Positions 1,769 to 64,000 of a stretch of DNA of 64,000 nt are shown piece after piece (the first letter of the stretch is position 1; each line of letters begins with the position of its first letter). The notes beneath the pieces are model-generated. The model did not search any database and was not told where the DNA came from. It was given only the letters and a program-made list of their open reading frames with translations. The position numbers and the translations under genes are program-made. The stretch is from Rebecca billardiae RCC1528 (Eukaryota; Protista; Haptophyta): the NCBI GenBank assembly GCA_965240325.2, contig OZ251234.1, forward strand, positions 1,674,001 to 1,738,000, in the 5' to 3' direction.

Positions 1769-4700
1769 ATGGCGGCGTCACAGATGGACTCGGTGATCCT
1801 CGAGGAGGATCTCGACGAGAACTACGAGCCTACGGAGGAGGGTGCGCGCAGCGGTGCTCCCTGCGCGGCGCGCGGCCTCGGCGCGGCGCGACGCGGCGGT
1901 GCGTGCGCGCGCGTGGGCCGAATCGGAGGTGGTGCGGTGCGCTGCTTCGCGCAGAGATCGTGGAGTACGCGAAGTGGCTCGGTATGGACCTGGACGCGGA
2001 CAAGGAGCTCTTCTGGATCGCGCGGGAGGGCCTGAAGGCGCCGCTTCCCGAGAACTGGAAGCCTTGGTGCGCGCGCGGCCGAGCGCGCGGCGCAGCCGAG
2101 CTCCGCATGCGCTGACGGCGCCCCCCCCGGCCTCCGCCTTGCCGCGCGCCGTCGCACGCGCGCGCAGTAAGACGCAGGATGGTGACATCTACTACTTCAA
2201 CTTCTCCACCGCCGAGTCCGTGTGGGAGCACCCGTGCGACGAGTACTACAAGAAGATGTACGCAGACGAACGCGCCAAGCACGCGGCGGCACAGCGGGGC
2301 GGCGCTGCGCGCGAGGCGCAGGGCGGCGCAGGGCAGGCGGCGGTGAAGGCGAGCGCGGGGGCACCCGTGGATCCGAACGCCGATGGGGCAGCGGCCGCCG
2401 CCGAGAGCGAGCAGCCGCCGCCGGTGGCGGTCGCAGTCGGCGGCGCCGCAAAGGCGGCCCGCGCCGCGCGCGCGGCTGCGGCCGAGGCGCCGGCGGAGGC
2501 GGCTGCGGGCAGCGCCGCGGCCAAGCCGGCAGGTGGCGCGCGGAAGGAGGCGAAGAAGGCGCCGCTCGGCGGCCTCGCAGGCGGTCTCGGCGGCACCACC
2601 GCGCCCGCCTCCAAGCTCGCGCCACTGGGCGGCGGTTTCGGCGATTCTGCCGGCGGCGCGCTGGCACGTGGCGGCAAGGGCGGACTGATTGAGCCACTGG
2701 GAGTCGTCGAGGGCGCGCCGCCCGCCGCGCTGGGCAAGCGCGCGGACGACCCTCTGCTGGTCGCCGCGGCAGGCACGCGCGAGCGCCGGCCCGCGTCGGC
2801 CGGCGCGCAGCCCGCGCCCGCGGCTGCCGACGCCGCGCCCGCCGCCTCTGCCACCGGGCGTCGGCCGGCGTCTGCGGACGCGCCCGCGGCCGCAGCCGCG
2901 TCACACGCAGACCGTCGGCGCGCTGAGACGAGGCTGGCGAGCGAGTTCGCCGAGTGGGAGCGCACGCGGCGTGCGGAGCACGCCGCCGCGCGCGCCGAGC
3001 TCGACGCGGCGCACGCGCGCGCGCTCGAGGACGCGCGCGCGGACGCGGAGCGTGCGCTCGCCGCCGCTCGCGAGCAGGGCGCCGCCGCCGCGCGCGCGGA
3101 GGCGGAGGCGGCGCGCGAGGCGGAGGAGCGCAAGGCTGAGGCGGCGCTGCGCGAGGCCCGCGAGCTGCACGAGCGCGAGCGCCAGGCCGTGCAGGCACGG
3201 CTCGACGCCGAGCTCGAGGCCGCGCGGCGCGCCGCCGACGCGGCCGCCGACGCCGCGCGCGCCGACGCTGACAGCGCGGCCGCACAGGCTGGCGCGGCCG
3301 CGCGCGCCGACGCGGAGGCGCGCGCGCGCGCCGACGCGGAGGCGCGCGCGCGCGCCGACGCGGATGCGGAGCTGGCCCGCGAGCGCGAGCGGCTGCTGCG
3401 GGAGCGGCGCGCGCAGCTCGAGGCGGAGGTGAGCGCCGACGCGGCCGCGGAGGCCGAGGCCGCGCGCGCGCGCGCGCGCGCAGACGCCGCCGCCGCCGCC
3501 GACGCGGAGCGGGCGCGCGCGCGCGCGGAGGCAGATGTGGCGGTGTCGGCTGAAGTGGCGGCTTACAAGGCGGCTCGTTTGGAGGCGGCGCGGCGGGAGG
3601 CGGAGGAGGAGGTGGGCGCGCGCGCCGCCGAGCTGCGCGCCGCGGCCGAGGCGCGGCACGCCGCGCGCGCCGAGGCCGAGGCCGCCGCCGCCGCGGACGC
3701 GCGCGTCGCCGAGGCGTCGGCCGCGGCGGGCGCGAGCGCCGCCGCGATCAACGCGGCGCGCGCCGACGCGCGCGCGGCCGCAGCGGCGCGGCGCGAGGAG
3801 TTCCGGGCGGAGGCGGAGGCGGAGGTGCGCGCCGCCGTGGCCGCCGAGGCGTCGGCGCGGCGCGACGAGTTCCGCGCGGAGGCGGAGCGCGAGCTGCGCG
3901 CCGCGCTCGCCGCCGAGGCATCCGCGCGGCGCCAGGAGTGGCGCACGCAGGCGGAGGCGGAGGCGCGCGCCGCCGTCGCGGCCGAGGCGGCGGCTGCGCG
4001 CGAGCGCGAGGTGGCGAGTGCGCTCGCGGCGGCGCGGCTCGACGCGCGCGCAGCCGCCGACGCGCGGCGCGACGAGCTCGCGGCGGAGGCGGTCGCCGAG
4101 GCGCGCGCGCGCGCGCACGAGCGCGCCGCCGCCGAGGTCGCGCGCGTCGAGGCGGAGGCGGAGGCGCAGGTGGCGGCTGCGCGCGAGGGCGTGGCCGCGC
4201 GCGTGGGCGCGGCTCACGACGCGGCGTCGGCCGCGCGCGCGGCGGACGCCGCCGCTGCTGCCGCGCGCGCCGACGGCGCCGCCGCGCTCGCGGAGGAGCG
4301 GCGCCGCGCCGAGGGCGCGCTCGAGGCCGAGCGGAGCGCGCACGCGGCCGCGCTGCGCGAGGCGCGCGCCGCGCACGCGCGCGAGCTCGCTGCGGTGCGC
4401 CAACAGCTCGCAGATGCCGACCGGCGCGCTGTGGACGCGGCGGGCCGCGCGGCCGCGGCCGAGGCGGCGCGCGCCGCCGCGCTGAGCGGCGCGGCCGCGG
4501 CCGCGCCGTCCGCCTCCGCGGCTGGCGGTGGCGCGTCGCGGCGCGCACCGGCGGGCAGCCGCGACGCGCCGGCCGCCGCGCGCGCCGCGCGCGCCGCGCG
4601 CGCCGACGCCGCCGACGCCGCCGACGCGGACGCGGACGCGGATGGCGGCGCGGCAGGCTTGGATGCTGCAGCGCTGCGCGCGCGCGCAGAGGAGGAGGCG

Positions 4701-6454
4701 GCGCGGTTGCGGCGCGCAAAGGCGCTTGTCGCGCAGCAGGTGCGGCCCCCGCGCGCAGCCCGCGTGCGCGCCGCGTGCCACGCGCGGCCCCGAGGCGCCG
4801 CCCAGCCCCTCCGCCCGCACTCACGCGCCCGGCACCCCCCGGCCCCGCCGCCGCATGCCGCGCGCCGCGCGCCCGCCGCCACACGCCGCACGCCGCGCCG
4901 CCGCGCGCTCAGGTGAAATTCGTCAAGTCTCGTCAGGCGCAGTTGCAGGCGACGCAGCGCGCGTGGAAGGCGGACATGAAGGCGGTGCGCTCGGCGGGCG
5001 ACAGGGAGGCTGAGGCGATGATGGCCGCCGTGCGCGAGCTGATCGAGGACCAGGTGCGTGTGTGTGCGTGCGCGTGTGTGCGCGTGCGCGTGTGCGCGTG
5101 TGCGTGTGTGCGCGTGTGCGTGTGCGCGTGCGCGTGTGTGCGCGCGTGTGTGTGTGTGCGTGTGTGCGTGTGTGCGTGTGTGCGCGCGTGTGCGGGCGGG
5201 CGCGCGCGCGCGTGCGCGCCGTGTCGCCAGGCGGGGGCCGTGCGCCCGCGCCTTGGCGTGCCCCCACAGCTGACGGCTCACCCTGCCGCCCTCCCTTCCC
5301 CTTCCGCTCCGCCCCCTGTCCGCCCGCCGCGCGCACACACACACGCACACACGTGTGTGCGTGCGCGCGCGCAGGCGGCGCGTCTGAACGAGGACGCAGC
5401 GCAGGTGGGCTCGCTGGCCGCGTGGGTGAAGCGCTCGGAGGCGCAGCTCCGCGCCGTGCGCGAGTCCGTCGGGCACCACATGCGGCGCTCGCTCAGCGAC
5501 AGTGCGCGCACGCGCGCGCGCACGCGCACAGCACGGGACAACAGCAGCGCATTGCCGCGCCGCGCCCGACCGCGCGCGCGCGCGGCGCGCCGTCATCCGA
5601 CCGCGCGCGCCCGCGCGCTCGCGCCGCTGCGCCTGTGCGCTGCGCCCGCGCGCGCGCGCACAGGCGACCTGTCTTCGCGCCTCTCCACGCCCTCGCTCTC
5701 CGACGGCGCGGACGCGGCCGCCAGGCTAGTGCCGCGCAAGCTCGGCACCGCGCTCGCGGCCATCCAGCGCGAGCTGGCGGAAGTTGTGGGGTATCTTCGC
5801 GCGCACCAGGGCGCGCCGCCGGGGCCGCAGCAGCCGGGCGGGTATTCTGGGTATTCTGGGTACGGCGCGCTGGGCGGCGCGGCGCGCGCGGCGCGCGCCG
5901 CCGGCGCGTACGGCGCGCGGCAGCCCGGCGGCGCGCGGCTAGACGTGCCGCTACAGTTTGTGCAGCCGGCGCCGGGCGTGCGGCCCGGCGGGCTGGCGCC
6001 CTCGGCGCGCGAGGCGCGCTGGGCCGGGCCGCGCGCGTGCGCGCCCTCGCAGCAGCCAAACGCGCAGCCGGGGGCGGCGCCAGGGACGGTGCCGATGCGC
6101 AAGTGGGCAGACTACCTCGCGCTGAGCAGGAGCGGCGGCGGCGCGGCCGCGCCCGATCCGCTGCAGGCGCTCGCGTCGAGACAGGCGGGCGCGGCGGCGG
6201 AGCGGATGCTCTCAGAGCACGACGCTTGGCTGCAGGCGTTCGGCGCGGCCGGCGCCGGCGCGGCGGCCGGTCCCTCGCTCGCGCCACGAGCTGCGGCCGT
6301 CAGCACTGAGCACGGCGGTCGCGGCGCGGACCGTGCGCTCAACATCGGCGCGGTGAGCGGTGCGGACGCGGCGGGGAACGAGGCGGTGGCGAGCGCTGAC
6401 TTTGTCATCTACATCACCGCGAACAAGGCGAAGGCGGCGGCGGGTGACGCGTGA
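1769..6454 (+). CDS. CEP164: CEP164-like centriolar distal-appendage protein (N-terminal WW module + long coiled coil), ~1271 aa, 6 exons
   Basis: Exons 1769-1841, 1955-2066, 2168-4739, 4913-5053, 5375-5501, 5664-6454 with GT-AG introns. The spliced N-terminus [73 protein letters not shown] is the CEP164 signature, followed by an A/E/R-rich coiled coil. Confidence 0.82.
5054..5213. repeat. Intronic (GT)/(GC) mixed dinucleotide microsatellite
   Basis: gtgcgtgtgtgtgcgtgcgcgtgtgtg... at the 5' end of intron 5054-5374; a complementary (CA)n tract lies at ~5334-5352. Confidence 0.85.
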
Positions 6455-7423
6455 GTCGCCACACTCTGACTCTGTCATCACTCACAGCCAGCTGCGGCGC
6501 GCGGCTGATGAATACAGTAGTGACAGAAGTAGAGTCATCGTAGGAGTGTGCGCCCTCGGGCTCGTGATGCCCGTGGCCGTGCCCGTGGCCCGCCGTCGCC
6601 CGTGACGACGGCCTTGACGGCGGCTTCGGACGGGCCTGACGGCCTAAATACTGTCATATACGTACTGCTCACTCTGACTGCTAGTGCTGACGCCTGCTGA
6701 GCCTGAGAGTGATCGAGTGCTGACGACTGCTCACTGACGATGTTACAAACTCACTCAAGTACAAACTGTGTCCCTGGCCGGCGGGCGGGGGGGTCGGCGG
6801 GCCGTGCCAGTGCTGTCGCAATCTTTCCTCTGCGGGTTCGCGTCATCTTTCCACATTCGCTCATGGCCGTGGGTGTCTGGGTGCCGGACAGTCCGAGGGC
6901 GAGGACCAGTGACACCTGAAGAGTGAAGTTCGGAGTTCTCGACTCTCCGGAGTCTCTCGGAACCGTCCGATGGCACGGTACACGTCTGTACTCTGTGCGC
7001 ATCAGCGAGGCCCACAGGCCCAGGAGGGAATGTGCAGCACGCGGGGCGGGGCGGGTAGCCAGTTGCTCCGCGCGAGCGCGGATACGCGCTGTATGTTCCG
7101 CATCTCGACCGCGAGGGCGTAATCGAGCGCCTCGCCGGCGGCGGCTGCGGAATCGCCGCCCGAATCGTCAGGCAGAATCCGAATCGGTCAACGGCCCGCC
7201 GGCCCGCAGCGCAGCTCCCAGTCATCTCACTCCCAGGCGGCCGTCGGCGATCGCGGAGGCGGCGCGCGGCGGGCGCCAAACGGCCATCCTGGACCTCCCG
7301 CCCAGGCGGGCGCCGCGGCCAATGAGCGTCGGCGTCGGCCAGCAGCCTAGCGAGGCGGCGACAGTGCCTGGGTACCACTGCGACCCACTGTCCGCCGCTC
7401 GGCGTCGAGTGGCGTCCCCGCGC

Positions 7424-8359
7424 TCAGCTAGCGGAGGAGAAGTCTCCAAAGTCGTCGTCTCCCATCCCGCCCTCCCCGCTCGCGCCCGCGGCGGCGAACT
7501 CGCCAAAGTCTTTGGACTCGACTTTCTGCACGGGAGGTGGTGCGCTCGGCGAGCCGGCGGACGATGGCGGCGGCGGCGGCGGCAGGAGCGCGGCGAGGGC
7601 CGCGGGGGCGCCCGCGAGGTCGCCCGAGGCGCGCCTCGGCGCGGTTCGATCGCGCTTCTTCTGGCCGAGGTCGATGGTGAGCGTCTGGCCCTCCTTCAGG
7701 CTCAGGTCGAGCGCGGGGCGCAGCTCGGGGTGCTCCTCGATCTGCTTATGCACCTCCTCCGCCTCGCGCTCGCGCCGCACGCTGCGCCAGTGGTCGCCGA
7801 TGGTCGCGTTGAAGTCGTACGCGTCGGGGCGCTCGCGGAAGCCGAGGCCGATGTACTGGTGGTGGCCCTTGCCATCCTCCAGCCGCAGCACGAAGTATCG
7901 GCTGCTGTCTGTCACGGGCTCCACGGACGTGGGCCCGACGCCCGGCTCATTCACCGGGCACATGGCGAAGAGCGCGCTCGTGTCCGCGTCCTCGAGGTAG
8001 ATGGTGAGCTTGGCGGCCGCCGCGCAGATGCGCAGCCGGCCGGACCAGAGCCACTTGTTCACATCCCAGTCGTTCGCCCGGTGCCCCGACTCGTTCTTTA
8101 GCGGCGGGATCTTGTACACAAAGCACTCCTGCGCGGCGCGCAGGCGCAGCAGCCATCACGCACGCACGGCCGGGCGCGCCGTCAGCCTCCCCGAGGGCTG
8201 GCGAAGGGGTGGCAGGGGTGGGGCGCACGGCCCGCGACGAGCGCAACCCCGGGCACCCTGCCGCCGCGTGCGCGCGCGGCGCGCCACCTTGAAGACGTGC
8301 AGGTTGTGCTCGGCAGCGCTTGCCGGCGGCTGGCCTTCTTCATCCTCCATATCGGCCAT
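7424..8359 (-). CDS. NECAP: NECAP, adaptin ear-binding coat-associated protein (PHear/DUF1681), ~258 aa, 2 exons
   Basis: Exons 8359-8288 and 8128-7424. Motifs ECFVYKIPP, GHRANDW, LFAMCPV, VEPVTDSSRYFVLR, IGLGFRERPDAYDFN, DLSLKEGQTLTI; C-terminal DFGEF/DFGDF adaptor-binding motifs. Confidence 0.93.
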
Positions 8360-8636: not shown

Positions 8637-11600
8637 ATGCTGCTCGTATCGTGCGCGCCGCACCGCCGCCGACGCGCTTCCGCGCGCGCGCGCGCCTCGC
8701 AACAGGCTCCACGAGCTCACCGGCCGTTCCCGTGCGCCTGCGCACCCCCCTCCGCGCGCGCCTCGCGTGCGCCAGCCGCGCCGCGTGCCGCACGCGCAGC
8801 GCGGGCCGGTCGCTCTTGAGGCGGACAGCGGCCGGGGCGGCGCGCCATGCGTCGGCGCTGGCGACGGCGGTGCGTGAGCACACGGAGGAGCGCGCAAAGA
8901 TGGGTATCGTGCCCACGCCGCTCAACGCCGAGCACACGAGCATGCTCGTCGAGCTGCTCAAGGACCCCCCCGCGGACGAGAAGGACTTCCTGCTCGACCA
9001 GCTCACCAACCGCGTGCCCGCGGGCGTGGACGAGGCGGCGTACGTGAAGGCGGGGTTCCTCACGGCGATCGTGAAGGGCGAGACGAGCTCGCCGCTCATC
9101 TCCAAGCAGCACGCGATCGAGCTGCTCGGCACGATGCAGGGCGGTTACAACGTGGCGACGCTGATCGAGGCGCTCGACGACGCCGAGCTCGCGCCGCTCG
9201 CGGCCGAGCAGCTCAAGCACACGCTGCTGGTGTTCGACGCGTTCTACGACGTGGAGGCGAAGATGAAGGCGGGCAACGCCGCCGCCAAGGCCGTCATCGA
9301 GTCGTGGGCCGAGGCCGAGTGGTTCAGCAAGAGGCGCGCGGTGCCGGAGAAGATCTCAGTGACGGTCTTCAAGGTGCCCGGCGAGACCAACACCGACGAC
9401 CTCTCGCCCGCGCCGGACGCGTGGTCGCGGCCGGACATCCCGCTGCACGCGCTGGCGATGCTGAAGAACCCGCGCGAGGGCATCTCGGAGAACGTGCCGC
9501 AGCAGATCGAGGAGCTCAAGCAGAAGGGCCTCCCGCTCGCGTACGTCGGCGACGTGGTCGGCACGGGCTCGTCGCGCAAGTCCGCGACCAACTCCGTCCT
9601 GTGGTACATGGGCGACGACATCCCGAACGTGCCGAACAAGCGGGGCGGCGGCGTGTGCATCGGGAGCAAGATCGCGCCCATCTTCTACAACACGATGGAG
9701 GACTCGGGCGCGCTCCCCATCGAGATGGACGTCGACAAATTCGAGATGGGCGACGCGGTCGACATTTTCCCGTACGAGGGTGTCGCCAAGAAGCACGGCA
9801 CGGACGAGGTGCTGGCGACCTTCGAGCTCAAGTCGCAGGTGCTGCTCGACGAGGTGCAGGCGGGCGGGCGGATCCCGCTGATCATCGGCCGGCAGGTCAC
9901 CGCGCGCGCGCGCGATGCCCTCGGCCTCGGCCCCTCCGCCGCCTTCCGCCTGCCCACCGACTCGGCGCAGAAGGCTGAGGGCTACACGCTCGCGCAGAAG
10001 ATGGTCGGCAAGGCGTGTGGCGTCGACGGCGTGCTGCCCGGCCAGTACTGCGAGCCGTACATGACGACGGTGGGCTCGCAGGACACGACGGGCCCGATGA
10101 CGCGCGACGAGCTCAAGGACCTCGCGTGCCTCGGCTTCCTCTCCGACCTCGTCATGCAGTCCTTCTGCCACACGGCCGCGTACCCGAAGCCCGTCGACGT
10201 TGTCACGCACCACACGCTGCCTGATTTCATCATGAACCGCGGCGGCGTCTCGCTGCGCCCGGGCGACGGGATCATCCACACGTGGCTCAACCGGATGCTC
10301 GTTCCCGACACGGTGGGCACGGGCGGCGACTCGCACACGCGCTTCCCCATCGGCATCTCCTTCCCCGCCGGCTCGGGCCTCGTCGCGTTCGCGGCGGCGA
10401 CGGGCATCATGCCGCTCGACATGCCGGAGTCAGTATTGGTGCGGTTCACAGGCTCGATGCAGCCGGGCGTCACGCTGCGCGACCTGGTGCACGCGATCCC
10501 GTACGCGGCGATCCAGGAGGGGCTGCTCACGGTGGAGAAGAAGGGCAAGAAGAACATCTTCTCCGGCCGCATCCTCGAGATCGAGGGCCTCGAGCACCTC
10601 AAGTGCGAGCAGGCGTTCGAGCTGTCGGACGCGTCCGCGGAGCGCTCAGCCGCGGGCTGCACGATCAAGCTGGACAAGGTGAGCGCGCGCGCGCCGCGCC
10701 GCCGCGCGCCGCGGCCGCAGCCGGTGGGCGGCGGGCTGCGCGCGCGCAGCGCCCGCCGACCACGCCGCGCGCGCGCCCGCCGCCACGCCCGCCCGCCGCG
10801 CGCGCAGGAGCCCATCATCGAGTACCTCAACTCGAACGTGACGATGCTCAAGTGGATGATTGCCGAGGGTGCGCGCGCGAGCGCGTGCGCGAGCGCCTCG
10901 AGCCGCCGCGCCGCCGCGCACGCGTGCCGCGCGCCGCGGCCGGGTGGCACGAGTGGCACGAGTGTCGCGCCGCGCGTGGGCACGCCACCCGCGCCGACGC
11001 ACGGCGCGCGCGAGCTAGCCGGCGCTCGAGCGTCGAGCGGCGGCGCGCTGGAGAGACGCTCACGCGCGCAAGCTCCCGGCGCACCTGCCTCGCCCCGGCG
11101 CCCGTTGCGCGTGCGTGGCCGCCCGCGCTCGCTCGCGCGCGCGCAGGGTACGGCGACAAGCGCACGCTCGAGCGGCGCATCGGCCGCATGCAGGAGTGGC
11201 TGGCGAAGCCGACGCTGATGCAGGCCGACCCGGGCGCCAAGTACGCCGCGGTGATCGAGATCAACATGAGCGATCTCAAGGAGCCGATCCTGTGCGCGCC
11301 CAACGACCCGGACGACGCCCGGCTCCTGTCCGAGGTCGCGGGCGACAAGGTGGACGAGGTGTTCATCGGCTCGTGCATGACCAACATCGGCCACTTCCGC
11401 GCGGCGGGCAAGCTGCTGAACAAGGTGGAGGGGCAGCTGCCCACCAAGCTGTGGGTCGCGCCGCCGACCAAGATGGACGCCGCGCAGCTCACCGCCGAGG
11501 GCTACTACTACACGTACGGCAAGGCGGGCGCGCGCACCGAGATGCCGGGCTGCTCACTCTGCATGGGCAACCAGGCGCGCGTGGACGACAAGGCGACGGT

Positions 11601-12367: not shown

Positions 12368-14119
12368 ATGGCGTCAGACCAGGAGATGCGCGCGGTCTTC
12401 GATCCGGGCGACCTTCTGATGAGCGCCGGCTCAGCCAAGCGTGACGGGTTCGTGGCCGTTCGACTGGCGCTTCTAGGCTTCATGTACTACTCGTCCGTCT
12501 ACTTCATCCGCATGGCCATCTTTGCTGGATCGTGGCGCGACGAGTGCTTGCCGGGCGGCGCGGACTTCAAGGCAGCGATCGGGGTGGCGTCATTCCTCGG
12601 CTACTTGTCCGGAAAGCCTTTTGCGCTGCTCATCACCTCGAAGCTGCCGTATAACCGGCTTCGAACAGCTCACGTCGCCGTGATCGTGATCTCTGGCTCG
12701 TGCTCGGCCGCGGTCGGCTTGCTGCCGCCGGTGGGCGGCGTACTCCTGTACGCGCTGTCAACCAGCGCGCTGGCGCCCGCGTGGGGGCTGCTCATGCGCT
12801 GCCTCGAAGGGCGTGCGCGCACGGAGGCGATCGCTGCGTTCGTCTCGCTCTCGTGGATCGGCGTCTCTGGCGTGGTGAAGGCGATCGGCAGGTCGATGCT
12901 CGACGCCGGCCTCTCGGAGCGGCAGATGGTGATGGCGTGCGCTGCGATCGGCGTGCTGGGCGGGTGCACGAGCGCCGTGCTGCTGTCCTTGCAGGCGGCG
13001 CCGTCCGCCATCGACCGGCATCACTGCGGGCACCGACTGCACGCCGCCTCCGCCCGCTCCGAGCTGCGCCGCGTCTTCAGCAACCACGGCATCGGCATCG
13101 TGCCGTGCATCATGGCCTACGTCATTTCGGGCGTGCTGCGAATCATCCGCGACTACTGGCAGCCAGAGCTGCTCGGCGCGCTGGGCGTGTGCGACCCGTT
13201 CGCGATGGCCGAGTCGGAGATGGGGCTCAGCGTGCTCGTGCTTGGCTTGCTGGCCATGCTCTCCGCCGTGCGGGACAGCCTGACCGCCCTCCGGCTGATG
13301 TGCGCGCTGGGGCTCGCGGGCTTTGCGCTGGTGGGAGGGCTCACGCTGCTGTGGCGCGCTGGCCTGCTGGATGGCTTCCAGTGGCTCACAGGGATGGGGT
13401 TTGGGGTGTTCCTCGCGTACACGCCCCCGGCCACGGTACTGTACGACAGGCTGTTCGCCGCCGCACGGGAGGACCTCACCAGCACGCCGTTGGTCGTCCT
13501 GGGAGACGCTGCCGGGAGCCTCTTCAGCGCGGTCGTGCTGTCCTGGCTCATGATGGTGCGGCGCGAGGCGGGCGGCGATGGTGGGGCGTGCGCGGCAGCG
13601 GGCGCGCGGGAGGCCGCGGCACCTGGCAGCCCGCCGCCCCCGCCCGCCCCGCCCGCGCCGGCGGCGCTGGAGGCTGGGACGGCGCCATGCCCAGGCGCGG
13701 ACGAGACCATGCTCCGCATCTTCGTGCAGGTCGTGCTGCTCGGCTCCGCGTGCTCCTTCGTGCTGTCGTGCGCCGCCGCCGTCTCGTTTGACGTCACGGT
13801 GCGCAGGAGTCGCCGGCGGGCTGCCGCCCGGCGGCAGCGTTCGGGTGCGTCAAATGCCACCGAGCTCGCTGCGGTGCCGAGCCACGACCAGCCCGAATCT
13901 GGGGACGATGGGCTCGCCCCTGAGGCGCTGCTGCCTGTGGCTGCGCTCGAGGAGCTGAGGACAGCGAGCAGTCACCACCTGACCTATCGGCATCGCAACA
14001 CAGCGCCGCTGCCATCAAATGGCAGCGCCGCTGCAGCGGCCAATGATGCCCTGTCGTCCGTGCCAGAGCCTGCGCCGGCGGCGGCGCCGGGGGCAAGTCC
14101 GCGGCAACAAACCGCTTGA
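12368..14119 (+). CDS. DUF5690-like multi-pass (MFS-like) membrane transporter, intronless
   Basis: 583 aa with ~11-12 hydrophobic segments. Motifs DFKAAIGVASFLGYLSGK, WGLLMRCLEGRARTE, SGVVKAIG, LRIIRDYWQPE and LYDRLFA resemble the bacterial DUF5690 consensus as recalled. Confidence 0.7.
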   Translation: MASDQEMRAVFDPGDLLMSAGSAKRDGFVAVRLALLGFMYYSSVYFIRMAIFAGSWRDECLPGGADFKAAIGVASFLGYLSGKPFALLITSKLPYNRLRTAHVAVIVISGSCSAAVGLLPPVGGVLLYALSTSALAPAWGLLMRCLEGRARTEAIAAFVSLSWIGVSGVVKAIGRSMLDAGLSERQMVMACAAIGVLGGCTSAVLLSLQAAPSAIDRHHCGHRLHAASARSELRRVFSNHGIGIVPCIMAYVISGVLRIIRDYWQPELLGALGVCDPFAMAESEMGLSVLVLGLLAMLSAVRDSLTALRLMCALGLAGFALVGGLTLLWRAGLLDGFQWLTGMGFGVFLAYTPPATVLYDRLFAAAREDLTSTPLVVLGDAAGSLFSAVVLSWLMMVRREAGGDGGACAAAGAREAAAPGSPPPPPAPPAPAALEAGTAPCPGADETMLRIFVQVVLLGSACSFVLSCAAAVSFDVTVRRSRRRAAARRQRSGASNATELAAVPSHDQPESGDDGLAPEALLPVAALEELRTASSHHLTYRHRNTAPLPSNGSAAAAANDALSSVPEPAPAAAPGASPRQQTA

Positions 14120-17221: not shown

Positions 17222-17634
17222 CACAACATCATCCACCAGCTGCTGACCAAGAACAGGCTACACCATCGTCCACCATGACCTGCCTCTGACCAAGTAGGCG
17301 ACGACATCATCCGCACCAGCTGCTGACCAAGTAGGGGACGGCCTGGCCGACGCCAACATGCTCACTCGCCTTTGATTTCGTACCCATGCACTTCCTGGTG
17401 GGCCTGACGACGTCCGGACGACGACAACAACGACATCCGCCATGGGGACCAACATCAACGCGCTCACACCACTGCCACTGCTGCAAGCTTCGACCAGTAC
17501 CACTACAGACGAATCAGGAGAGCTGCGCCCTCGTGCCTGTGTCTTTAAATCATAGAATTGGTACACTACCACTCTTACCGCTCGGCGTGCCTTCACCTTC
17601 GGTACCAGACGTGGCGCGAAGCGGTCATCCTTTC

Positions 17635-19035
17635 ATGGCGGGATGGCGCCCGGCCGTGCTCTTGCTCGCAGCGGTGGCATGCCCCTGGCCACGGAGTGCG
17701 GTGGGAGTGGTGTATCGGGCGAAGGCGTCGCCCATCGCTGACACTGCCTTCGCATGCCGTTCCAAGCACGTGCGCTCCCCCATCGTGGCGAGCACGGCCA
17801 CGAGCCCGGTGGAAGTGTACTCGACACTTGGCTGCCCGTACTGCGTGCGCGCGAAGAAGACGCTGTCCCAGCTCGGCGTGCCCTACGTCGAGCACGACGT
17901 GACGGGCGACGAGGTGATGCGCGCTGACGTGGCCAAGCGCGCGATGCGCACATCCGTGCCCCAGATCTTCATCGCGGGCACACACCTCGGTGGGTGCGAC
18001 GACCTGCTGGCGGCGGTCGAGAGCGGGAGGCTGGCGGCCATGCTGGAGCCGTTCGGCATCGTGCCGCAGCAGGTCCCTGAGGAGAGCGCGCCGGCAGCAC
18101 CGCTCGTCGACCAGCCTGTCCCGCCCGAGCTCCGGCCGCGCGATGGCATCCTCAACCATCTCGCCCCGCCACCCGGCCCCGACGGTGGCGTCGTGCAGGC
18201 GCGCGGCGCGAGCGAGATCGCCTCCTCGTTGCAGCGGCAGATCCTCGCCCTGTACGACGAGTTCGTCACGCCGGACGGCGCGCGCGTCGACTACGCGAGG
18301 ATGCGCCTCTCCAGCCGCTTCCAAGACTACGTGCGCGCGGCGAGCGAGCTGCGCGCGCTCGCGCACTCTGCGCTCCCGGCATCGCACGGCGCGAGGCTCG
18401 CGTTCTGGCTCAACCTGTACAACGCGCTGGTGATCCACGGCATGGCGGTCGTCGGCACGCCCGCCGGGCGAGAGGAGCGCGGCGCGTTCTACGGCGGATC
18501 GAGTGGCGTGGCGTACGACGTGGGAGGCGCCCGGCTCACCCTCGATGACATCGAGCACGGCATCGTGCGAGGCTCGCCCGCCGGCGACGCGCGCAGCTTT
18601 GCTCCGGAGGACGCGCGCGCGCTGCTTGTGCTGCCGCGCGCGCGCTTCGACGCGCGCATCCACTTTGCGCTCAACTGCGGCGCCAAGTCGTGCCCACCGA
18701 TCAAGATCTACGAGGCCGAGCAGCTCGACTTTGCTCTTGGCCTTGCGGCGCAGGCCTTCTGCGAGAGCACCACACGCGCGGACCCCGTTGAGCGCGTGGT
18801 GGTACTGAGCAAGCTCTTTGATTGGTACGCTGTCGACTTCGGGGGCGGCGAGGGCGGCGACGAGCGGGAGGTGCTCGCGCGTGTCGTCGAGTTTCTCGGC
18901 GCCTCAACGAGCGACGTGAGCATCGCGCTGCGCCAGTTGCTCGCCGATGACGGCGGTCGCGCTGACACGAGCTCAGCATCGCCTATGCGCATCGAGTATG
19001 ACGAGTATGACTGGGGCGCAAACGAGACAGAATGA
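17635..19035 (+). CDS. Glutaredoxin (CPYC) + DUF547 fusion, probably plastid-targeted
   Basis: Hydrophobic signal peptide plus S/R-rich transit-like segment. Grx motifs GCPYC, SVPQIFI, GGCDD. DUF547 motifs VDY, LAFWLNLYNAL, LTLDDIEHGIVR, RIHFALNCGAKSCPPI, SKLFDWYAVDF, YDEYDW. Confidence 0.88.
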   Translation: MAGWRPAVLLLAAVACPWPRSAVGVVYRAKASPIADTAFACRSKHVRSPIVASTATSPVEVYSTLGCPYCVRAKKTLSQLGVPYVEHDVTGDEVMRADVAKRAMRTSVPQIFIAGTHLGGCDDLLAAVESGRLAAMLEPFGIVPQQVPEESAPAAPLVDQPVPPELRPRDGILNHLAPPPGPDGGVVQARGASEIASSLQRQILALYDEFVTPDGARVDYARMRLSSRFQDYVRAASELRALAHSALPASHGARLAFWLNLYNALVIHGMAVVGTPAGREERGAFYGGSSGVAYDVGGARLTLDDIEHGIVRGSPAGDARSFAPEDARALLVLPRARFDARIHFALNCGAKSCPPIKIYEAEQLDFALGLAAQAFCESTTRADPVERVVVLSKLFDWYAVDFGGGEGGDEREVLARVVEFLGASTSDVSIALRQLLADDGGRADTSSASPMRIEYDEYDWGANETE

Positions 19036-23675: not shown

Positions 23676-26600
23676 ATGCGGGGCATACGCGCGGGCGCGG
23701 CGTTGGGGCTGCTGGTGACGGGCGCGGCGGCTCTGCCACGGGGTGTGATTTCGCGCAACTACGTGGCCACCATCTCGAACCCGACGATGATCGCAGGTCA
23801 GCGCGCGCGCGCGCTCGACGCGGGGCATCCCGAGGTGGCCAAGCTGGTGCGCGGCGCGACGTTCATGACGTGGATGCGCGTGGATGGGTACGAGTCCGCG
23901 TCTGGCGGGCCGCGGATGCACTTTCAGCTCGTTCGCTCGTCCACGTGCTGCTCCTTTGTGCCCTTCCAGTCGAACTCCGGCCACATGCTCTTCTCCACCG
24001 ACCTGCCGATTCGCTGGGATGCGCTGACCGAGCTCACGATCGAGTATGCAGAGCAGTGGCACCACTACGCGCTGACGTGGAACGCATCGGACGGGCGTGT
24101 GCGTGCGTACTTTGACGGCGTGGGCTACGACCTCGCCGACGACGTGCGCGGCTCGCTCATCGAGGACCGCACGTTTGCGACGCTGGGCGCGCATGTCTAC
24201 CCGGAGAACTCGGATAACCCGGAGCGCCACCAGATCGTCAACGACGAGTTCGCATTCCGCGGGCAGATGGACGACGTGGCGCTGTTCGGCGGGGCGCTCT
24301 CGGCGGAGCAGATCGCCGAGCGCTGGAACGCCTCGCTCACCGCGCGCCTCCGCGCCGGCCTCGAGCCAGACCTGCTGCTGCTGTACGACTTTGACCGGCC
24401 GCTCGAGTCGCCGCCCAACGCGACCGGGCCCTCGGCGGTCGTCTCGCGCGTCGAGCGGAACCTGGGCACGATCGGGGCGGACGGCGACCTGATGCTCGGG
24501 CAGATGACGCACGCGCACCCCGAGATGCGCGGCGCCGTCGAGATCTCGCGCTTCGAGGGCCACGTCCTCCAGCTGCACCCGCCGGAGCGCACGCCGCCGC
24601 CGCTCTCGCGCGACCCGCTGCGCAAGGCGGTCGCGGCCGATGCGCCGTACGTGGCGTGGGCGCGCGCGGGCGAGCGGCTGGCGCTCGTGCTGGACGACGG
24701 GCGCGTGGTCAACGTGAGCGCGCCCGAGCCCTTTGACGCGCCGCTCGCGCTCGAGCTCGACGGCGGCGCCACCGCCGTGCACGTGTGGCCGCTCTCGCCG
24801 CCGCTGCCGATGCGTGCGGACGGCGGCGCGCACATCTTCACGCACTTCACGATGGAGCAGGGAGGCCTCAAGCTGCTCGAGGTGTTCAGCGGCGGCGGCG
24901 CGCACGGGCAGCGGCAGCACGTGGTGGTGACGCGGCTGCCCGGGCGCGGCGCGCTCTTCGCCGCGGAGGTCCTCTCGGGGCCTCCCGCCGAGGGCACCTC
25001 AGCGGGCGGCTCGCAGCTGCCAGTCGTGCGCAGGGTGGGCGCGCGGCTCGGCGCGGTGGGCGCCGCGCTGCCGGGCAGCGCGCCGTACGTGTACTACCAG
25101 CCGGAGCCCGACGAGTTCGGCAATGCGTTCGACTCGTTCGGCCTCGCGTACGCGCTTACCGACGCGCCCGACCTGCGCAGCGCGACGATGAACTTCACCG
25201 TCGACGTGACGCCGTTCGACACGCTGCCGGTCGTCGAGCCGAGCGCGAGCGCCGGCGTGGACGAGGACGCGCCCGCGGGCGTGCGCGTCGAGCTGCGCGC
25301 GGGCAACAGGGAGGCGTCGAACCCGTTCGGGCTGTTCGTCACGCGGCTGCCCGCGAAGGGCGACCTCTTCTTCGACGACCCGTTCGCCGACGGCGCGCGC
25401 GTGCGCATCGAGGCGGAGCACAACCCGTACGCCGTGGGCGACGTGCTCACGCAGTACGCGCACGAGGTGCTGGCGGTTTCGTCGTTCTGGGGCACCGGCT
25501 CGTTCGGCGACTACCACCCGATCCAGCTGATCGGCCCGCCGTCGTGCAGCACCTACGGCGAGTGCGCGGCCGAGTTTCCCGACGGCGTGCCGCGCGTGGG
25601 CGAGCTGCTGTACCACCCGCCCTACCCCGGCGGCCAGCTCGCGCGCGTGCTCGACCTCGAGAGCGCGCCTGGGCCGGATGGGGACGGCGCGGATGGCGGC
25701 GGCGCGGGCGCGACGCGGCCGACGCACGCGCACATCGAGTACCTGCCGCAGTGGGTGCGCGACGCGGCGGGCGCGTGGGTGCCGTGCGTGATGGACCCGC
25801 GCGACGAGGCAGCCGCGTACCCGCGCGACTGCGCGCCCGTGCGGCGCGGCCAATCGCCCACGCCGCGCGCGCGCGTGCCGCTGAGCGCGGTGTCGCCCTC
25901 GGCGGCGGCGGTGTGGTGTCCGGCGAGCAAGGGCTTCATCGGCGCCGAGACGGTGTCCAACCCGGACAGCGGGCGGTGGGGCCCGCAGTTCGTCTTCGAG
26001 CACTCGCAGGTGCCCTCGTACCCGCAGCTCGGCGTGACCGAGTGGGTCGAGCTCCGCGTGCAGCAGGCCGTGTACGTCGTGAGCGCCGAGGTGGGCTCGC
26101 CGCGCGGGATGGGCGCCGTGGTGGGCGTGAGCGTCGGCGCGCCGGGCGGCGGCTGGACGCGGCTCTTCCGGCAGCCCGCGCAGCGCGCCGCGGTCGAGCT
26201 CGCCGCGAGCACGCGCACGTACTACGCGTGGACCGTGCCCGTGTGCCGCACGCACTTCAAGACCGACCGCGTGCGCCTCGAGCTCGACACGAGCGCAGAG
26301 TCCGGCATCGCTGATTGGAACTACGTCGACTATGTCGCGCTGATCGGGAGTACGACGCTGCAGAGCGCTGCGCTGCCGGTCGGCGTGCGCGAGGTGACGT
26401 ACGTGCCGCGTGCGAACGCGCACGGGTCCGACTGGTTCGCCTTCTCCGCCACCGACTGCCCCGGCCAGCCTCTACGCTCGGCGCGCGCCGACGGCCGCGT
26501 GGACGTGACGATCGCGCCGCGCAACGACGCGCCGCACGCGCATGACGTGCAGCTGAGCGTGATTGTGGATGAGCTGGTGGCCTTCGAGCTGCCCGCGGAC

Positions 26601-29435
26601 GACGTGGACGACGCGGGCGAGGCGGCCGGCTCCGAGGACGAGGCCGGCGCGCACTCGCTCGTGCTGCGCCTCGAGGAGCTCGAGCCGGACGGCGCGCAGC
26701 TCGAGCTCTTCGGCTCTGAGCAGCAGGCGCGCACGGCGGCCGGCGCGCTCGCCCTGCCAGCCGAGCTGGCCAAAGGCACGGCGACCGTGTGGGCGCGCGC
26801 GCGCGCGGCGGGCGAGAGCAAGCTGCGCTTCACGGCGAAGGACGCCGAGGGCGCGCGCTCGGAGCGGGCCACGGCCACGCTGCTCGCCGCCGTCAGCGTG
26901 GAGCAGGTCGAGTTCTGGCGCACGGCGCTCGTGTTCACCCTCGTGGCGGTGCTCGGCGCGTGCGTGGTGCTCGTGCTCTGCGTCGGCGGCTTCCGCGCGT
27001 ACGGGCGCGTGAGGGCCGCGCTCGACGCGCAGCGTGAGCAGGACGAGGCGAACGTGTCGCGCGTGCTCAACGCCCTCTCCGCCGTCGTCGAGCTCAAGTG
27101 CCCCGTCGTGCTGCTCCCCTTCGCCAAGCTGCGCGAGCTGCGCCGGCTCGCGCCGCACGAGCGCGTGCGCTCGGATCCCCTGCTGGTCACCCTCGACACT
27201 TACGAGGAGCTCACGGCCTTCTGCGCCGAGCACGAGACGGTGTTCATCTCGCACCAGGCGCGCGCGCGCGCGCGCTCGTCCGCTCCAGCTGCCCTCCGCG
27301 CCTCGGCCGCCCGTCGCGCCCTTCGCACCGCCACCGCGTCAGTCTGTCCGCCTGGCCGGGGTGCGCGCCGACCGCGCCTCGCGCCCGGCCGCGCGCCCCG
27401 CCCCGCGCGCAGTGGCTCGGCCACTCTGAGCCCGACCCCGACAACGTGCACTTCGAGGCGATCTGCGGCGCGTGCTCGGAGCTGTGCGCGCGCACGAGCG
27501 TGCCGCCCTCAGCGCTCTACGTGTGGGTGAGCCGCATGCGCCCGCCGCCGCGCGCGCCGTCGTCAGCCATTGCGAACGGCGCGGTCTGCACGCACTCACT
27601 GCCGCCGACGAATCAAGAGCCCTGCGCCGTCCTACCTGTGTCGTGAAATCAGAGATGAATTGGCCCAACGCCCGCGCGCGTGCCCGGCGCTCACGCGCGC
27701 GCGCCCACACCCACTCCGCCGCCACCGCCGCCCCGCACGCTTCGCGCGCAGATCGACTACCTCTGCATCCCACAGAAGAATGCCACCTCAAAGCAGCGGG
27801 CGATCGACACGCTCGCCGTGTGCGCCGCCGCGATGCGCAACTTCGTGGTGGTCGCGCCGCGAGCGACGCACGCCGACACGGGCGCGGAGTGTGGCGTGGA
27901 GACATACAACGTGCGCGCCGCCGCCGCGCCGCCGCGCCGCCGCGCCGCCGCGCCCTCGGCTGAGCCGAAGCCCGCCCGCGCGCTCCCTGCCCCGCGCGGC
28001 GCGCGCCCCGCGCGACGTTGCTCCCGCTGCTGTCGCACTCGCGGCGCCCGCGGCGCGCGGCCATCAGCTGCGAGGCTGGTGCCGGCTGGAGCAATGGGCG
28101 AGGCTCACGCTCGGCGGCGCGGTGGGGATGCACATGTGGGAGGGCTCGGACGCGGACGCCGTCGTGCACACCGCCGCTCACGTCGACGACGCGCGCGCCG
28201 CGCCGCGCAACGCCGCGCGCGAGACAGCGCCCTCGCAGCCCTCGCCGCTGCAGCCGCTGCACGCTCGCCCCGGCTGGCGCGACGAGGTGGCTCTGGTGCT
28301 GCATGGCGACTTCTCGCAGGAGGGCGACAAGCACAAGCTCGTCGACGCGATCATCGGGCTGCTCGTGCTCGCCAAGCTGCAGCACGTCGCAGAGCGGAAC
28401 GCCGGCGTCGCCGACGCCACCTCCGACGCCGCCCTCCTGGACGCAGACGCCGCCACCACCGAGCGCTTCTTTCCGCGAGAATTCTTTGGCGACCTGCTCA
28501 GCGTCGCTCGCGTCGCCGTGGACGCGCTCGGGCACGAGCTCGTGGGCGAAGCGGGCGGCACGGCCGCCGGCTCGATCCGCGGCGGGCTTGGCTCGCGCGA
28601 GCCGACGGATGAGGAGACGGGGCGGTCCCGCGCGCTCGCGTCGACGACGCGCGAGCGGGCCCCTCACGCAGGCACAGCTCACAGCGGGGCGCGCGCCTTC
28701 GGCCGCCGGTCGCGCTGGGGCCGTCGCTCGCTCAGTGAGGAGGGCGCGAGGCGGCACGTGGGCGCGGCGGAGCCCGCGGCGCGTGCGCACTCTGCGGCTC
28801 AGTGTGACGAGGAGGACCCGCACGCCTCGGCCGAATCCTTCTGCTCTGAGCGCGCGGTCGGCGCGCACGCGTCACTTGACTCGCCCCGCCGCACGCGCGC
28901 CTCGGCCGACGGGCTGGTCCAGCGGCTGCACAAGGCGTCGCCGCGCAGGCCGTCGGCTTCCGACGCGCTGAAGCGCTGGTCGGGGGCCGCCACGCAGCCG
29001 TGGCAAAGGACAGCCGCGCGCGGTGCGGAGGGGTGGCGCCTCTCATCCGCGCTCGGCTCGGCCGTGCGCCCGGAGCCGCGCGCGCGCGCGCCTCCACGCG
29101 TGATCACGGCCAACCACCTCAGTGAAAGCAGCCATGAGAAGATCTTGGCGATGGTGCGCGGCGGCGCACGCGGCGATCATGCGGAGGGAAGCTCGCACTC
29201 GAGCAGGCTGAGGAATCGGAGCGGCCAGCTGCGCTCACATGTCAATATGGTGAGGATCGCGGGGGGGGGGCGGCGTTGCGATTCCGCGCCGAGCAAGCGC
29301 GGTACGATCAGCAGCATGGCCACCAACAGCCGCGGCAGCACCTCCTCGCGCGGCCACTTCTCCATTGCGCGCACCGCCTCGGCCTCCAGCTTGTCAGGAG
29401 TGGTCGCGCCTGCCACCGACGACGCTGATGACTGA
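23676..29435 (+). CDS. Type I single-pass receptor-like protein: signal peptide, LamG-like, Ig/cadherin-like repeats with inserted galactose-binding-like domain, TM, cytoplasmic HET/TIR-like domain; ~1740 aa, 4 exons
   Basis: Exons 23676-27257, 27413-27526, 27752-27910, 28068-29435 (first intron GC-AG). LamG: WHHYALTWNASDGRVRAYFDG..FRGQMDDVALF. TM: ALVFTLVAVLGACVVLVLCVGGF. Spliced cytoplasmic motifs: VFISHQWLG, YVWIDYLCIPQ, YNLRGWCRLEQWA. Confidence 0.85.
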
Positions 29436-63100: not shown

Positions 63101-63230
63101 TGGACGAGCGCGACGGCACGAGCTGCTGCCGCCCGCGAGCCGCCGGCTCGCCGCCGCCCGCGCCGAGCTCGCCCCGCGCCTGCTCGGCCCGCGCCTTGAG
63201 CACGGGGCTCTCGTGCTTTGGACGCATCAT
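57139..63230 (-). CDS. Large IQ-motif/coiled-coil protein with C-terminal tandem CEP164-type WW modules, ~1786 aa, 5 exons
   Basis: Exons 63230-59268, 59054-58455, 58221-57961, 57844-57675, 57505-57139 (all GT-AG, frame-consistent). IQ-like AAARIQEWWRR and IKTVQSLAR. Modules MASRLGI..ELFLLPLAVEAITCPLPAGW..FRHLVTGE...HP and ELVWLAEMLLG..FPAGW..YYAN...HP. Confidence 0.8.
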
Positions 63231-63392
63231 CGCCACTCCGCACGGCGCCCACGCCGCTCGACGCTGCGCACGGAGCGGGGAATGGCAACGGGAGCCTGCA
63301 CGATGCGGCCGGCTGCCTGCCCCAGCTCGTGGAAACGCCACTGCGGGTACAGCTGAAGAGCAGTAACGACCTGTTTCAGTGTTTCGCCGGCA

Positions 63393-63413
63393 CTGATCAC
63401 CCGGAGCCCGTAA
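63393..63413. repeat. Solo copy of putative TIR end, CTGATCACCCGGAGCCCGTAA
   Basis: 19 bp identical to 21411-21429, followed by TA. Confidence 0.5.
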
Positions 63414-64000
63414 TAGTGAATAGGCTACGCTCGACTTCATCTGACTGACTGTCGCTCTGATGACAGAATGAATCGGCGAGTTGTCTGATAGTGCTCACTG
63501 TGATAGCTGTCCGCGGGGCTTAGCCTCGCGGCGCCGGCGTGCGGCGACACTGCCGCTGCGCCCGCCCGCCGATACCAGAACTTTCGGCCACGGCGCACCG
63601 CCGTGGGGTCGTGTGGGGCGGCGGCTGACTCGGTCACTCGGGTCGGCCGCCGGGTCCCCGCGGCGTGTCTGCCGTGGGATCGCTGCTCGCGCGCCGGGCA
63701 GCTGATGCCGCCCGGCCCCCAGGCTCAACGATGGTGTCGATGAATCACGAAGCCGATCGCGTCGCCCGAGCCCGGAGGGGCCGGAACAGGCGGAATCGCA
63801 AGCCGCATTCGCCACGCCGGCCCAGTCCGATCGGCCGTGATGGAAGATGCATGCACGTGGCGGTTTTGGCATGGCGAGCGGCTCTGTGCCCGCGAAGGCA
63901 GCTGCCCAGAGCAGCTGCGAGCTCGTCGTTGGCACAGCCAGCCCTCGCGGCTTCGCGCGTCCTCCGGCCGGCCATGCTCAACGCTGCCCGTCCGAGCAGC

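Follow-up and report, generated by a model that had tools for sequence, protein, structure and literature searches.

A candidate single-pass receptor of the haptophyte Rebecca billardiae with a lectin-like ectodomain and a HET/TIR-like cytoplasmic module

Receptors that couple an extracellular sensor across the membrane to a TIR-type domain have already been reported from haptophytes. Genes of Gephyrocapsa (Emiliania) huxleyi such as cogent1101_i1 encode an ectodomain, one transmembrane helix and an intracellular domain with a conserved Glu, which was called TIR by HH-suite probability, and the transmembrane TIR gene, which the authors propose to be receptor-like, shows induction 0.5 h after virus was added (New Phytol 2025, PMC12489294). 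A survey from 2010 had described Emiliania huxleyi as being without leucine-rich repeat (LRR) receptors (PMC2939053). The HET domain is a remote relative of TIR with a conserved Glu (PMC9153377), and both its activity and its structure are listed as undetermined (PMC12881547, PMC10197012). Here we analyse a gene on the + strand, positions 23676 to 29435, of a 64,000-nucleotide stretch of the genome of Rebecca billardiae RCC1528 (contig OZ251234.1, positions 1,674,001 to 1,738,000; hereafter the window). We show that its predicted product falls within a large family of modular receptors, with haptophytes as the source of its named members, and we are moderately confident that it is best explained overall as a single-pass type-I receptor with a lectin-like outside, a HET/TIR-like module inside and a putative enzymatic output.

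Besides the layout of a ligand-binding-like ectodomain, one transmembrane helix and a TIR-type domain, the G. huxleyi ectodomain-transmembrane-TIR proteins have a leucine-binding and EGF-like ectodomain, which by description is similar to that of P0004 and P0124, two relatives of the window module; compared likewise by description, that report (PMC12489294) mentions no HET-like family, no ectodomain swapping and no LamG ectodomain. With the Toll-like (TLR) and interleukin-1 (IL-1) receptors the window protein has in common the type-I layout of an ectodomain, one transmembrane helix and a predicted cytoplasmic α/β domain of the TIR class, and ligand-induced dimerisation would be the natural model of activation for both. 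It differs from them in that its ectodomain is built of LamG and β-sandwich domains instead of being LRR or immunoglobulin (Ig)-only, no LRR match having been found in the window protein, and in that the module of its family has no TIR Pfam match and is extended by further elements at its N- and C-terminal ends, whereas the TIRs of animal TLRs are adaptors. The initial annotation of this stretch had spoken of convergence on the TLR architecture, which is a fair description of the signal-peptide-like N-terminus, the transmembrane helix and the C-terminal domain but is not new for haptophytes (PMC12489294). Closer Toll-like look-alikes than the window gene are P0099 (1387 amino acids, aa) and P0131 (849 aa), which combine an LRR_8 or LRR_1 ectodomain and one transmembrane helix with the HET-like module. 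In design, an exchangeable sensor on a constant output, the family equals the receptor guanylate cyclases and the class-C G-protein-coupled receptors (GPCRs) with their ANF_receptor/Venus-flytrap sensors, from which it differs in that the output is HET/TIR-like in place of a cyclase, a kinase or a core that couples to G proteins. New here are the LamG/β-sandwich version of the module receptor and the finding of one ectodomain common to HET-like, TIR_2 and GPCR outputs; our literature searches brought up no paper that treats HET-type domains of haptophytes.

The gene is read as four exons (23676-27257, 27413-27526, 27752-27910 and 28068-29435), which join in frame to 5223 nucleotides (nt) encoding 1740 aa without an internal stop. 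As the initial annotation had stated, the cytoplasmic domain comes to light only upon splicing: its core (aa 1188-1308) is assembled across all three junctions and forms a single ungapped block with seven database proteins at 45-57% identity. The conserved unit begins right after the transmembrane helix and not at FISHQW. Its juxtamembrane part (aa 1108-1186; 26997-27233), a predicted long helix continuing from the membrane followed by a small β/α unit, contains the family-conserved residues E1162, R1165 and D1174 and is aligned by the relatives from directly after their own transmembrane helix; the distance from the end of this helix to SHQW is 79-91 aa in the measured single-pass relatives and 87 aa in the window protein (aa 1105 to 1192). 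The first core strand, TVFISHQ, closes exon 1 (27234-27257), and all 52 relatives share its F, S, H and Q. Exon 2 (aa 1195-1232; 27413-27526) supplies a W, the PDPD motif, helix A and strand B up to the W of WID and aligns without gaps to the seven relatives, with W1195, P1201, D1202 and W1232 conserved. Exon 3 (aa 1233-1285; 27752-27910) supplies the IDYLCIPQ loop, helix B and strand C as well as H1272, C1279 and Y1284, and exon 4 opens with the LRGWCRLEQWA helix (28068-28139), in which R, W and R are invariant and the C is found in 49/52 relatives. The rest of the core and a helical C-terminal subdomain follow at 28239-28532 (to aa ~1440; aa 1345-1438 against 784-865 of P0100). The signature of the core is SHQW...PD...WxDxxxxPQ...H...C...Y..RGWCRxE, with a juxtamembrane helix/beta segment of ~85 aa before it and the helical cap behind. 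The HET-like motif order that had been noted at the outset (beginning FISHQW...WIDYLCIPQ) is borne out by the spliced module, which retains 24/24 positions whose conservation among the 52 relatives is 90% or more, and the Glu of WCRLE that had been put forward as catalytic is intact as E1293 (codon 28089-28091) and 98% conserved (51/52 relatives).

How widely this unit is distributed became apparent when 1.84 billion representative proteins were scanned exhaustively with HMMER: exon 3 alone (53 aa) matched 132 proteins at E≤0.001, many of them short and part of them possibly fragments. In local phmmer comparisons of the spliced module (aa 1107-1450) with the fetched matches, more than 40 proteins scored with E values from 8e-66 (P0100) to 1e-37, the alignment falling into two blocks (aa 1108-1308 and 1345-1438). 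Prymnesium parvum, P. polylepis, Isochrysis galbana and MMETSP are the named sources, the rest being mostly marine metagenome and metatranscriptome assemblies. An Atlas feature search with exon 3 returned haptophyte clusters only, without names, and within the 64-kb window there is no second copy of the module. Pfam, HH and structure statements on the module throughout derive from exon pieces, local scripts and relatives.

The sensors linked to this module are highly varied. Ectodomains found on the same unit of transmembrane helix plus module comprise ANF_receptor/Peripla_BP_6 (many), FG-GAP, right-handed beta-helix, Ephrin_rec_like, dCache_1, LRR_8, LRR_1, DOMON and multi-pass MHYT, and the Atlas contains fusions of the module with Ank, MORN, LRR_6 and HNOB. 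The initial annotation had suggested looking in the genome for paralogues with variable ectodomains; among database proteins, relatives of that kind are numerous (ANF/PBP, LRR, dCache, DOMON, FG-GAP). Relatives of the window ectodomain, in turn, were found by searching with aa 560-1080. P. parvum AB1Y20_005900 (P0161) has the same ectodomain and module and aligns to the window protein over its full length (E 5e-135), and the same combination occurs in P0159 and P0162. P0163 and P0164 place a Pfam TIR_2 domain behind the same ectodomain type and one transmembrane helix, and in P0160 the ectodomain is mounted, as in a class-C GPCR, on a 7tm_3 core. Since one ectodomain stands on HET-like, TIR_2 and GPCR outputs, we regard it as a sensor cassette, for which the HET-like module is one exchangeable output among several, and P0160, P0163 and P0164 look like cases of natural output swapping on that cassette. 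Of the indirect arguments that HET-like and true TIR_2 tails may do similar jobs, the strongest is that the ectodomain alternates between them. In P0162 (1733 aa) the ectodomain type is accompanied by several hydrophobic segments and by the HET-like module, behind which lie C-terminal EF-hands that hint at a link to Ca2+. Word-indexed searches with the first 500 aa of exon 1 and with aa 1-125 of exon 4 gave no match, the former probably being swamped by low complexity.

A structure was predicted with AlphaFold2 for the relative P0100 (residues 575-868, 57% identical to the window protein in the core) from a 52-row alignment, and scored a pLDDT of 96.1 and a pTM of 0.91. In this model a long helix from the membrane (2-34) is followed by a small beta/alpha unit with strands at 40-44 and 66-69, a beta-alpha core and a helical cap (helices 218-293). 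The core is a three-layer α/β arrangement in which TVFISHQ forms strand 1, strand 2 ends in WID and WCRLEQWA forms helix 3 (184-197). The best neighbours of the model among solved structures are mostly TIR domains and nucleoside 2-deoxyribosyltransferases, with middling structural scores that are tied with those of unrelated Rossmann-like folds; Foldseek gave no match in the PDB at E≤0.001, and the TIRs appeared at E 0.09-0.3. The fold check proposed along with the initial annotation, carried out on P0100, yielded a three-layer architecture and TIR neighbours but nothing significant among PDB entries at that threshold. Among predicted structures, an ascomycete cluster, 95% of which is PF06985, superimposes on the module model with a TM-score of 0.51 over 186 residues (root-mean-square deviation 4.0), a predicted ascomycete TPR/Ank cluster with 0.65 over 222 residues, and predicted haptophyte clusters with Ank, MORN, LRR_6 and H-NOX with 0.56-0.73.

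On the sequence level, HET (PF06985) is the sole Pfam family that was matched repeatedly, by 24/52 members at E≤1 (best 1.4e-5). P0045 (22.0 bits) and P0099 (20.2 bits) come near the cut-off of 22.5, whereas exon 3 of the window gene alone reaches E 0.22 and 12.3 bits at profile positions 52-91, and P0161, the closest full-length relative, has no HET match at E≤0.01. In sequence searches of the PDB, exon 3 found no match and the family profile no chain at E≤10. With the fungal HET proteins (HET-E/D/R, TOL, PIN-C, HET-6) the module has the order of conserved blocks in common, including the final RGW..E, and the structural overlap with the predicted ascomycete clusters extends beyond a TIR-sized core; most module matches are below the Pfam cut-off, however, and the fungal proteins are cytosolic and often NLR N-termini or stand-alone, whereas here the domain is the tail of a membrane receptor with a fixed juxtamembrane segment. 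To the enzymatic TIRs (SARM1, AbTir, RUN1/RPS4/RPP1, SPARTA TIR-APAZ, ThsB) and to the deoxyribosyltransferases there is no detectable sequence homology. Our own reading is that the module is probably a divergent HET-type domain which is larger than TIR and has a core of the TIR/deoxyribosyltransferase class.

What, then, would such a module do behind a surface sensor? We propose that the receptor would reside as a type-I protein in the plasma membrane or an endomembrane, where an extracellular macromolecule, possibly a glycan, would draw ectodomains together. Clustering would be relayed by the rigid helix that is predicted to run from the membrane into the juxtamembrane segment, whereupon the cytoplasmic domains would self-associate and become active. 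E1293 could then drive cleavage or transfer at the N-glycosidic bond of NAD+ or another nucleotide, the result being a nucleotide-derived signal or loss of NAD+. The parts of this proposal differ in strength: signalling via self-association of the HET-like domain is in our estimate fairly likely, whereas enzymatic NAD+ or nucleotide chemistry, which is drawn from analogy with enzymatic TIRs, can be put forward only tentatively.

The alternative that survives best is a HET-like domain that has no enzymatic function and serves for assembly or as an adaptor, like the TIRs of animal TLRs; upon ligand-induced clustering it would recruit soluble HET-like proteins by homotypic contacts, and these would carry the signal. 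Soluble module relatives with the interaction repeats Ank, MORN, LRR_6 and TPR are numerous, and many of the 132 matches are short, even if part of these may be fragments; moreover, not all TIRs are enzymes (PMC9153377) and HET activity is undetermined (PMC12881547). An adaptor is harder to reconcile with the pattern of conservation, as 14 invariant and 10 near-invariant positions, mostly polar or charged, persist among relatives whose identity to the reference is only 27-48%, and as the Glu lies on the helix that bears the catalytic Glu in TIRs, whereas docking surfaces would usually be less strictly conserved. Polar residues are numerous among the invariant ones (S, H, Q, D, D, Q, H, Y, R, R and E) and would fit an active site better than a docking surface. 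We consider a pure adaptor unlikely.

Several points nevertheless weigh against a receptor with an enzymatic, TIR-related output. No TIR Pfam family was matched at E≤1 by any of the 52 members, and hhalign comparison with TIR_2 domains gave 2.7% for that of P0164 and 0.8% for that of P0163, with only the FISHxW strand aligned. The predicted structure is that of a relative and not of the window protein, and the equivalence of E1293 with the catalytic Glu of TIRs is a topological one, drawn from its place early in the third helix of the modelled core, as in TIRs. HET domains are so far without demonstrated enzyme activity (PMC12881547, PMC10197012), and some TIRs are non-enzymatic (PMC9153377). 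LamG and β-sandwich domains bind proteins as often as sugars. Finally, splicing at this locus is read from homology and not from transcripts of its own. The module had initially been described as a TIR-related HET domain; of this, the HET matches and the presence of TIRs among the fold neighbours stand, while at the sequence level neither TIR families nor hhalign support the TIR part.

As to the biological role, sensors of the family such as PBP/ANF, dCache, MHYT and H-NOX suggest that the module serves general environmental signalling at least as much as immunity, and a specifically immune or allorecognition role appears rather doubtful to us. This bears also on a second alternative, in which the window protein would be an adhesion or surface-matrix protein whose module acts as a cell-death switch triggered by self/non-self contact or damage, as in fungal HET allorecognition. 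The combination of LamG, Ig/cadherin-like and β-sandwich domains is typical of adhesins, but a module that is placed behind the small-molecule sensors PBP/ANF, dCache, MHYT and H-NOX fits signalling better, and the same ectodomain on a class-C GPCR core likewise fits signalling better than killing; we think this explanation improbable. A bolder extension of the receptor reading would have the HET-like module as the common enzymatic output of a haptophyte, perhaps wider protist, receptor superfamily, in the place that kinases and cyclases occupy in animals and plants. Glycans, amino acids and nitric oxide (NO) would then be converted into NAD+- or nucleotide-derived, for example Ca2+-mobilising, second messengers, and a general signalling enzyme would have given rise to the fungal HET death domains and to immune TIRs as specialised branches. 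We regard this as speculative and on balance unlikely.

Haptophytes drive ocean blooms, and how they sense microbes, viruses and each other is nearly uncharted. The family described here is a modular system in which a single conserved cytoplasmic domain of the HET/TIR class is coupled to LRR, lectin-like, amino-acid-binding and other sensors, and the ectodomain that occurs on HET-like, TIR_2 and GPCR outputs provides natural swap experiments. Should the module prove to be an enzyme, this would be the first activity for the HET branch, listed as undetermined by fungal biologists, and would link algal surface sensing to NAD+ or nucleotide signalling. The single locus analysed here adds one architecture to a barely studied family, which one paper touches on.

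An erroneous gene model or a dead gene, with exons that belong to separate genes or with a long GC-rich open reading frame and a tail that are chance frames, is largely refuted and in our judgement hardly credible: GC-rich DNA here does give long reading frames in all frames, no RNA run is listed for this DNA and the C-terminal tail is of low complexity and unconserved, but the exon 1 frame alone has the ectodomain, the transmembrane helix and the conserved module as far as its 88th aa, the alignment is ungapped across the junctions, third-position periodicity marks every exon and none of the introns, the 24 conserved positions have all been retained and there is a full-length counterpart in P. 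parvum. We are thus highly confident that the locus is one real, intact four-exon receptor gene of this family. The long open reading frame 23676-27530 is coding up to 27257 only. In the model's frame GC content at third codon positions (GC3) is 0.86-0.99 as compared to ~0.5 at second positions (GC2) in 4/4 exons, and in none of the three introns is such periodicity seen.

The introns measure 155, 225 and 157 nt, with the donors GC, GT and GT, respectively, and CAG as acceptor in 3/3 cases. Intron 1 (27258-27412) is of the GC-AG type and runs from a 5' end GCGCGCGC to a 3' CAG. Intron 2 (27527-27751; GT-AG) has the 5' end GTGAGC, the 3' end CAG and an in-frame stop at 27644-27646, and intron 3 (27911-28067; GT-AG) has the ends GTGCGC and CAG. 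SHQW, WxD and Y-x-x-RGW are invariant across the 52 relatives and therefore fix the exon ends to the base; in particular, as SHQ|W is invariant across intron 1, the donor must follow the CAG at 27257, which requires the GC donor. The spacing of Y-x-x-R over the intron 3 junction is that of the family. Among the family proteins, P0100, one of the seven core relatives, stems from the MMETSP transcriptome and the family match P0079 from a Trinity assembly, and both represent spliced mRNAs. The three introns that had been annotated, including the GC-AG one, are confirmed in this sense by the in-frame join, the ungapped alignment of relatives and the invariant SHQW. The P. parvum counterpart (L001; CM083870.1, gene 3001-8353) has six exons whose intron positions are unlike those of the window gene: its sole core intron lies 10 aa upstream of window intron 3, and FISHQW to WxDY is encoded within a single exon. 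The introns of this gene are thus not conserved between the two algae, and their positions lend no extra support to the model. All three introns are very GC-rich, with 0.7-0.9 at every phase, and the GC-AG intron opens with a run of GCGCGCGC.

The ectodomain is preceded by a start codon, the first ATG after a stop, and a signal-peptide-like N-terminus (aa 1 to ~25; 23676-23750, + strand, as for all features of the gene), with a basic n-region followed by a moderately hydrophobic stretch at aa 7-25; the N-terminus aligns with that of P0161 (residue 28 with residue 11 of the relative). The LamG/concanavalin-A-like domain (aa 60-214; 23853-24317) is matched by Pfam Laminin_G_3 with E 1.5e-9 and 38.6 bits against a cut-off of 27.6, and it is present also in the ectodomain relatives P0160, P0161 and P0163. 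A single strong hydrophobic segment, the only one above a Kyte-Doolittle value of 1.7, peaks at 3.09 at aa 1085-1103, is followed by Arg-rich residues and marks the transmembrane helix (aa ~1083-1106; 26922-26993). These three features agree with the initial annotation. Positive-inside residues behind the transmembrane helix, together with an ectodomain that has five NxS/T sites, lead us to infer that the protein is single-pass and that the module faces the cytoplasm.

Between these elements lies a beta-rich central ectodomain (aa ~385-900; 24828-26375) with invariant Cys, as defined by alignment with six relatives. Conservation in these six other proteins spans aa ~385-980 at 28-34% identity, with C624, C630, C704, C719, C857 and C928 invariant. 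AlphaFold2 modelling of the window ectodomain from a 7-row alignment was poor (pLDDT 51) and all-beta in the central part, and Foldseek with this model returned only generic strings of beta-sandwich domains; for these reasons we do not claim the galactose-binding fold that had been annotated. It persists merely as a lead, in that aa ~735-900 are possibly discoidin/galactose-binding-like, with PAPP-A scarf, F5/8 type C and a carbohydrate-binding module (CBM) as language-model neighbours in the Atlas, all scoring below 0.9. The Ig/cadherin-like domain or domains (aa 905-982; 26388-26621) fared better: Pfam Big_9 is matched above its cut-off (E 2.3e-5, 25.6 bits versus 23.6), whereas Cadherin_4 over the same residues (E 1.4e-4) is under the Pfam cut-off, and both matches are stronger in the relative P0159 (2e-8 and 5e-7, respectively). 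BLAST detected no internal repeats in the ectodomain and no similarity of the ectodomain to the 132 module matches.

In exon 4 the module of the window protein carries an Ala/Pro-rich extra loop of ~30 aa (28140-28238), which sits between the WCRLE helix and the next core strand and is absent from all compared relatives. The stretch keeps its coding periodicity (GC3 0.94, GC2 0.61), and a lineage-specific loop is therefore likelier than a fourth intron; a short in-frame intron, with GT at 28161 and AG at 28237-28238, was considered and judged less likely on the same grounds. After aa ~1440 the protein ends in a low-complexity tail rich in Ala, Ser, Arg and Gly (28533-29435, including the stop), the extent of which is uncertain: its periodicity is weaker, with GC3 still the highest, and it is without conservation in the relatives.

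Elsewhere in the window, the open reading frame 57477-63440 on the - strand (1987 aa) has no Pfam match at E≤1e-4 and is maybe a gene, long reading frames being easy to obtain in GC-rich DNA. A DUF5690 protein is encoded at 12368-14119 (+) and a Glutaredoxin plus DUF547 protein at 17386-19035 (+); both genes appear to be ordinary neighbours that are unrelated to the receptor. The open reading frame 8651-11218 (+) contains the bacterial-type aconitase B domains Aconitase_B_N, Aconitase_2_N and Aconitase, with E values down to 1.5e-93.

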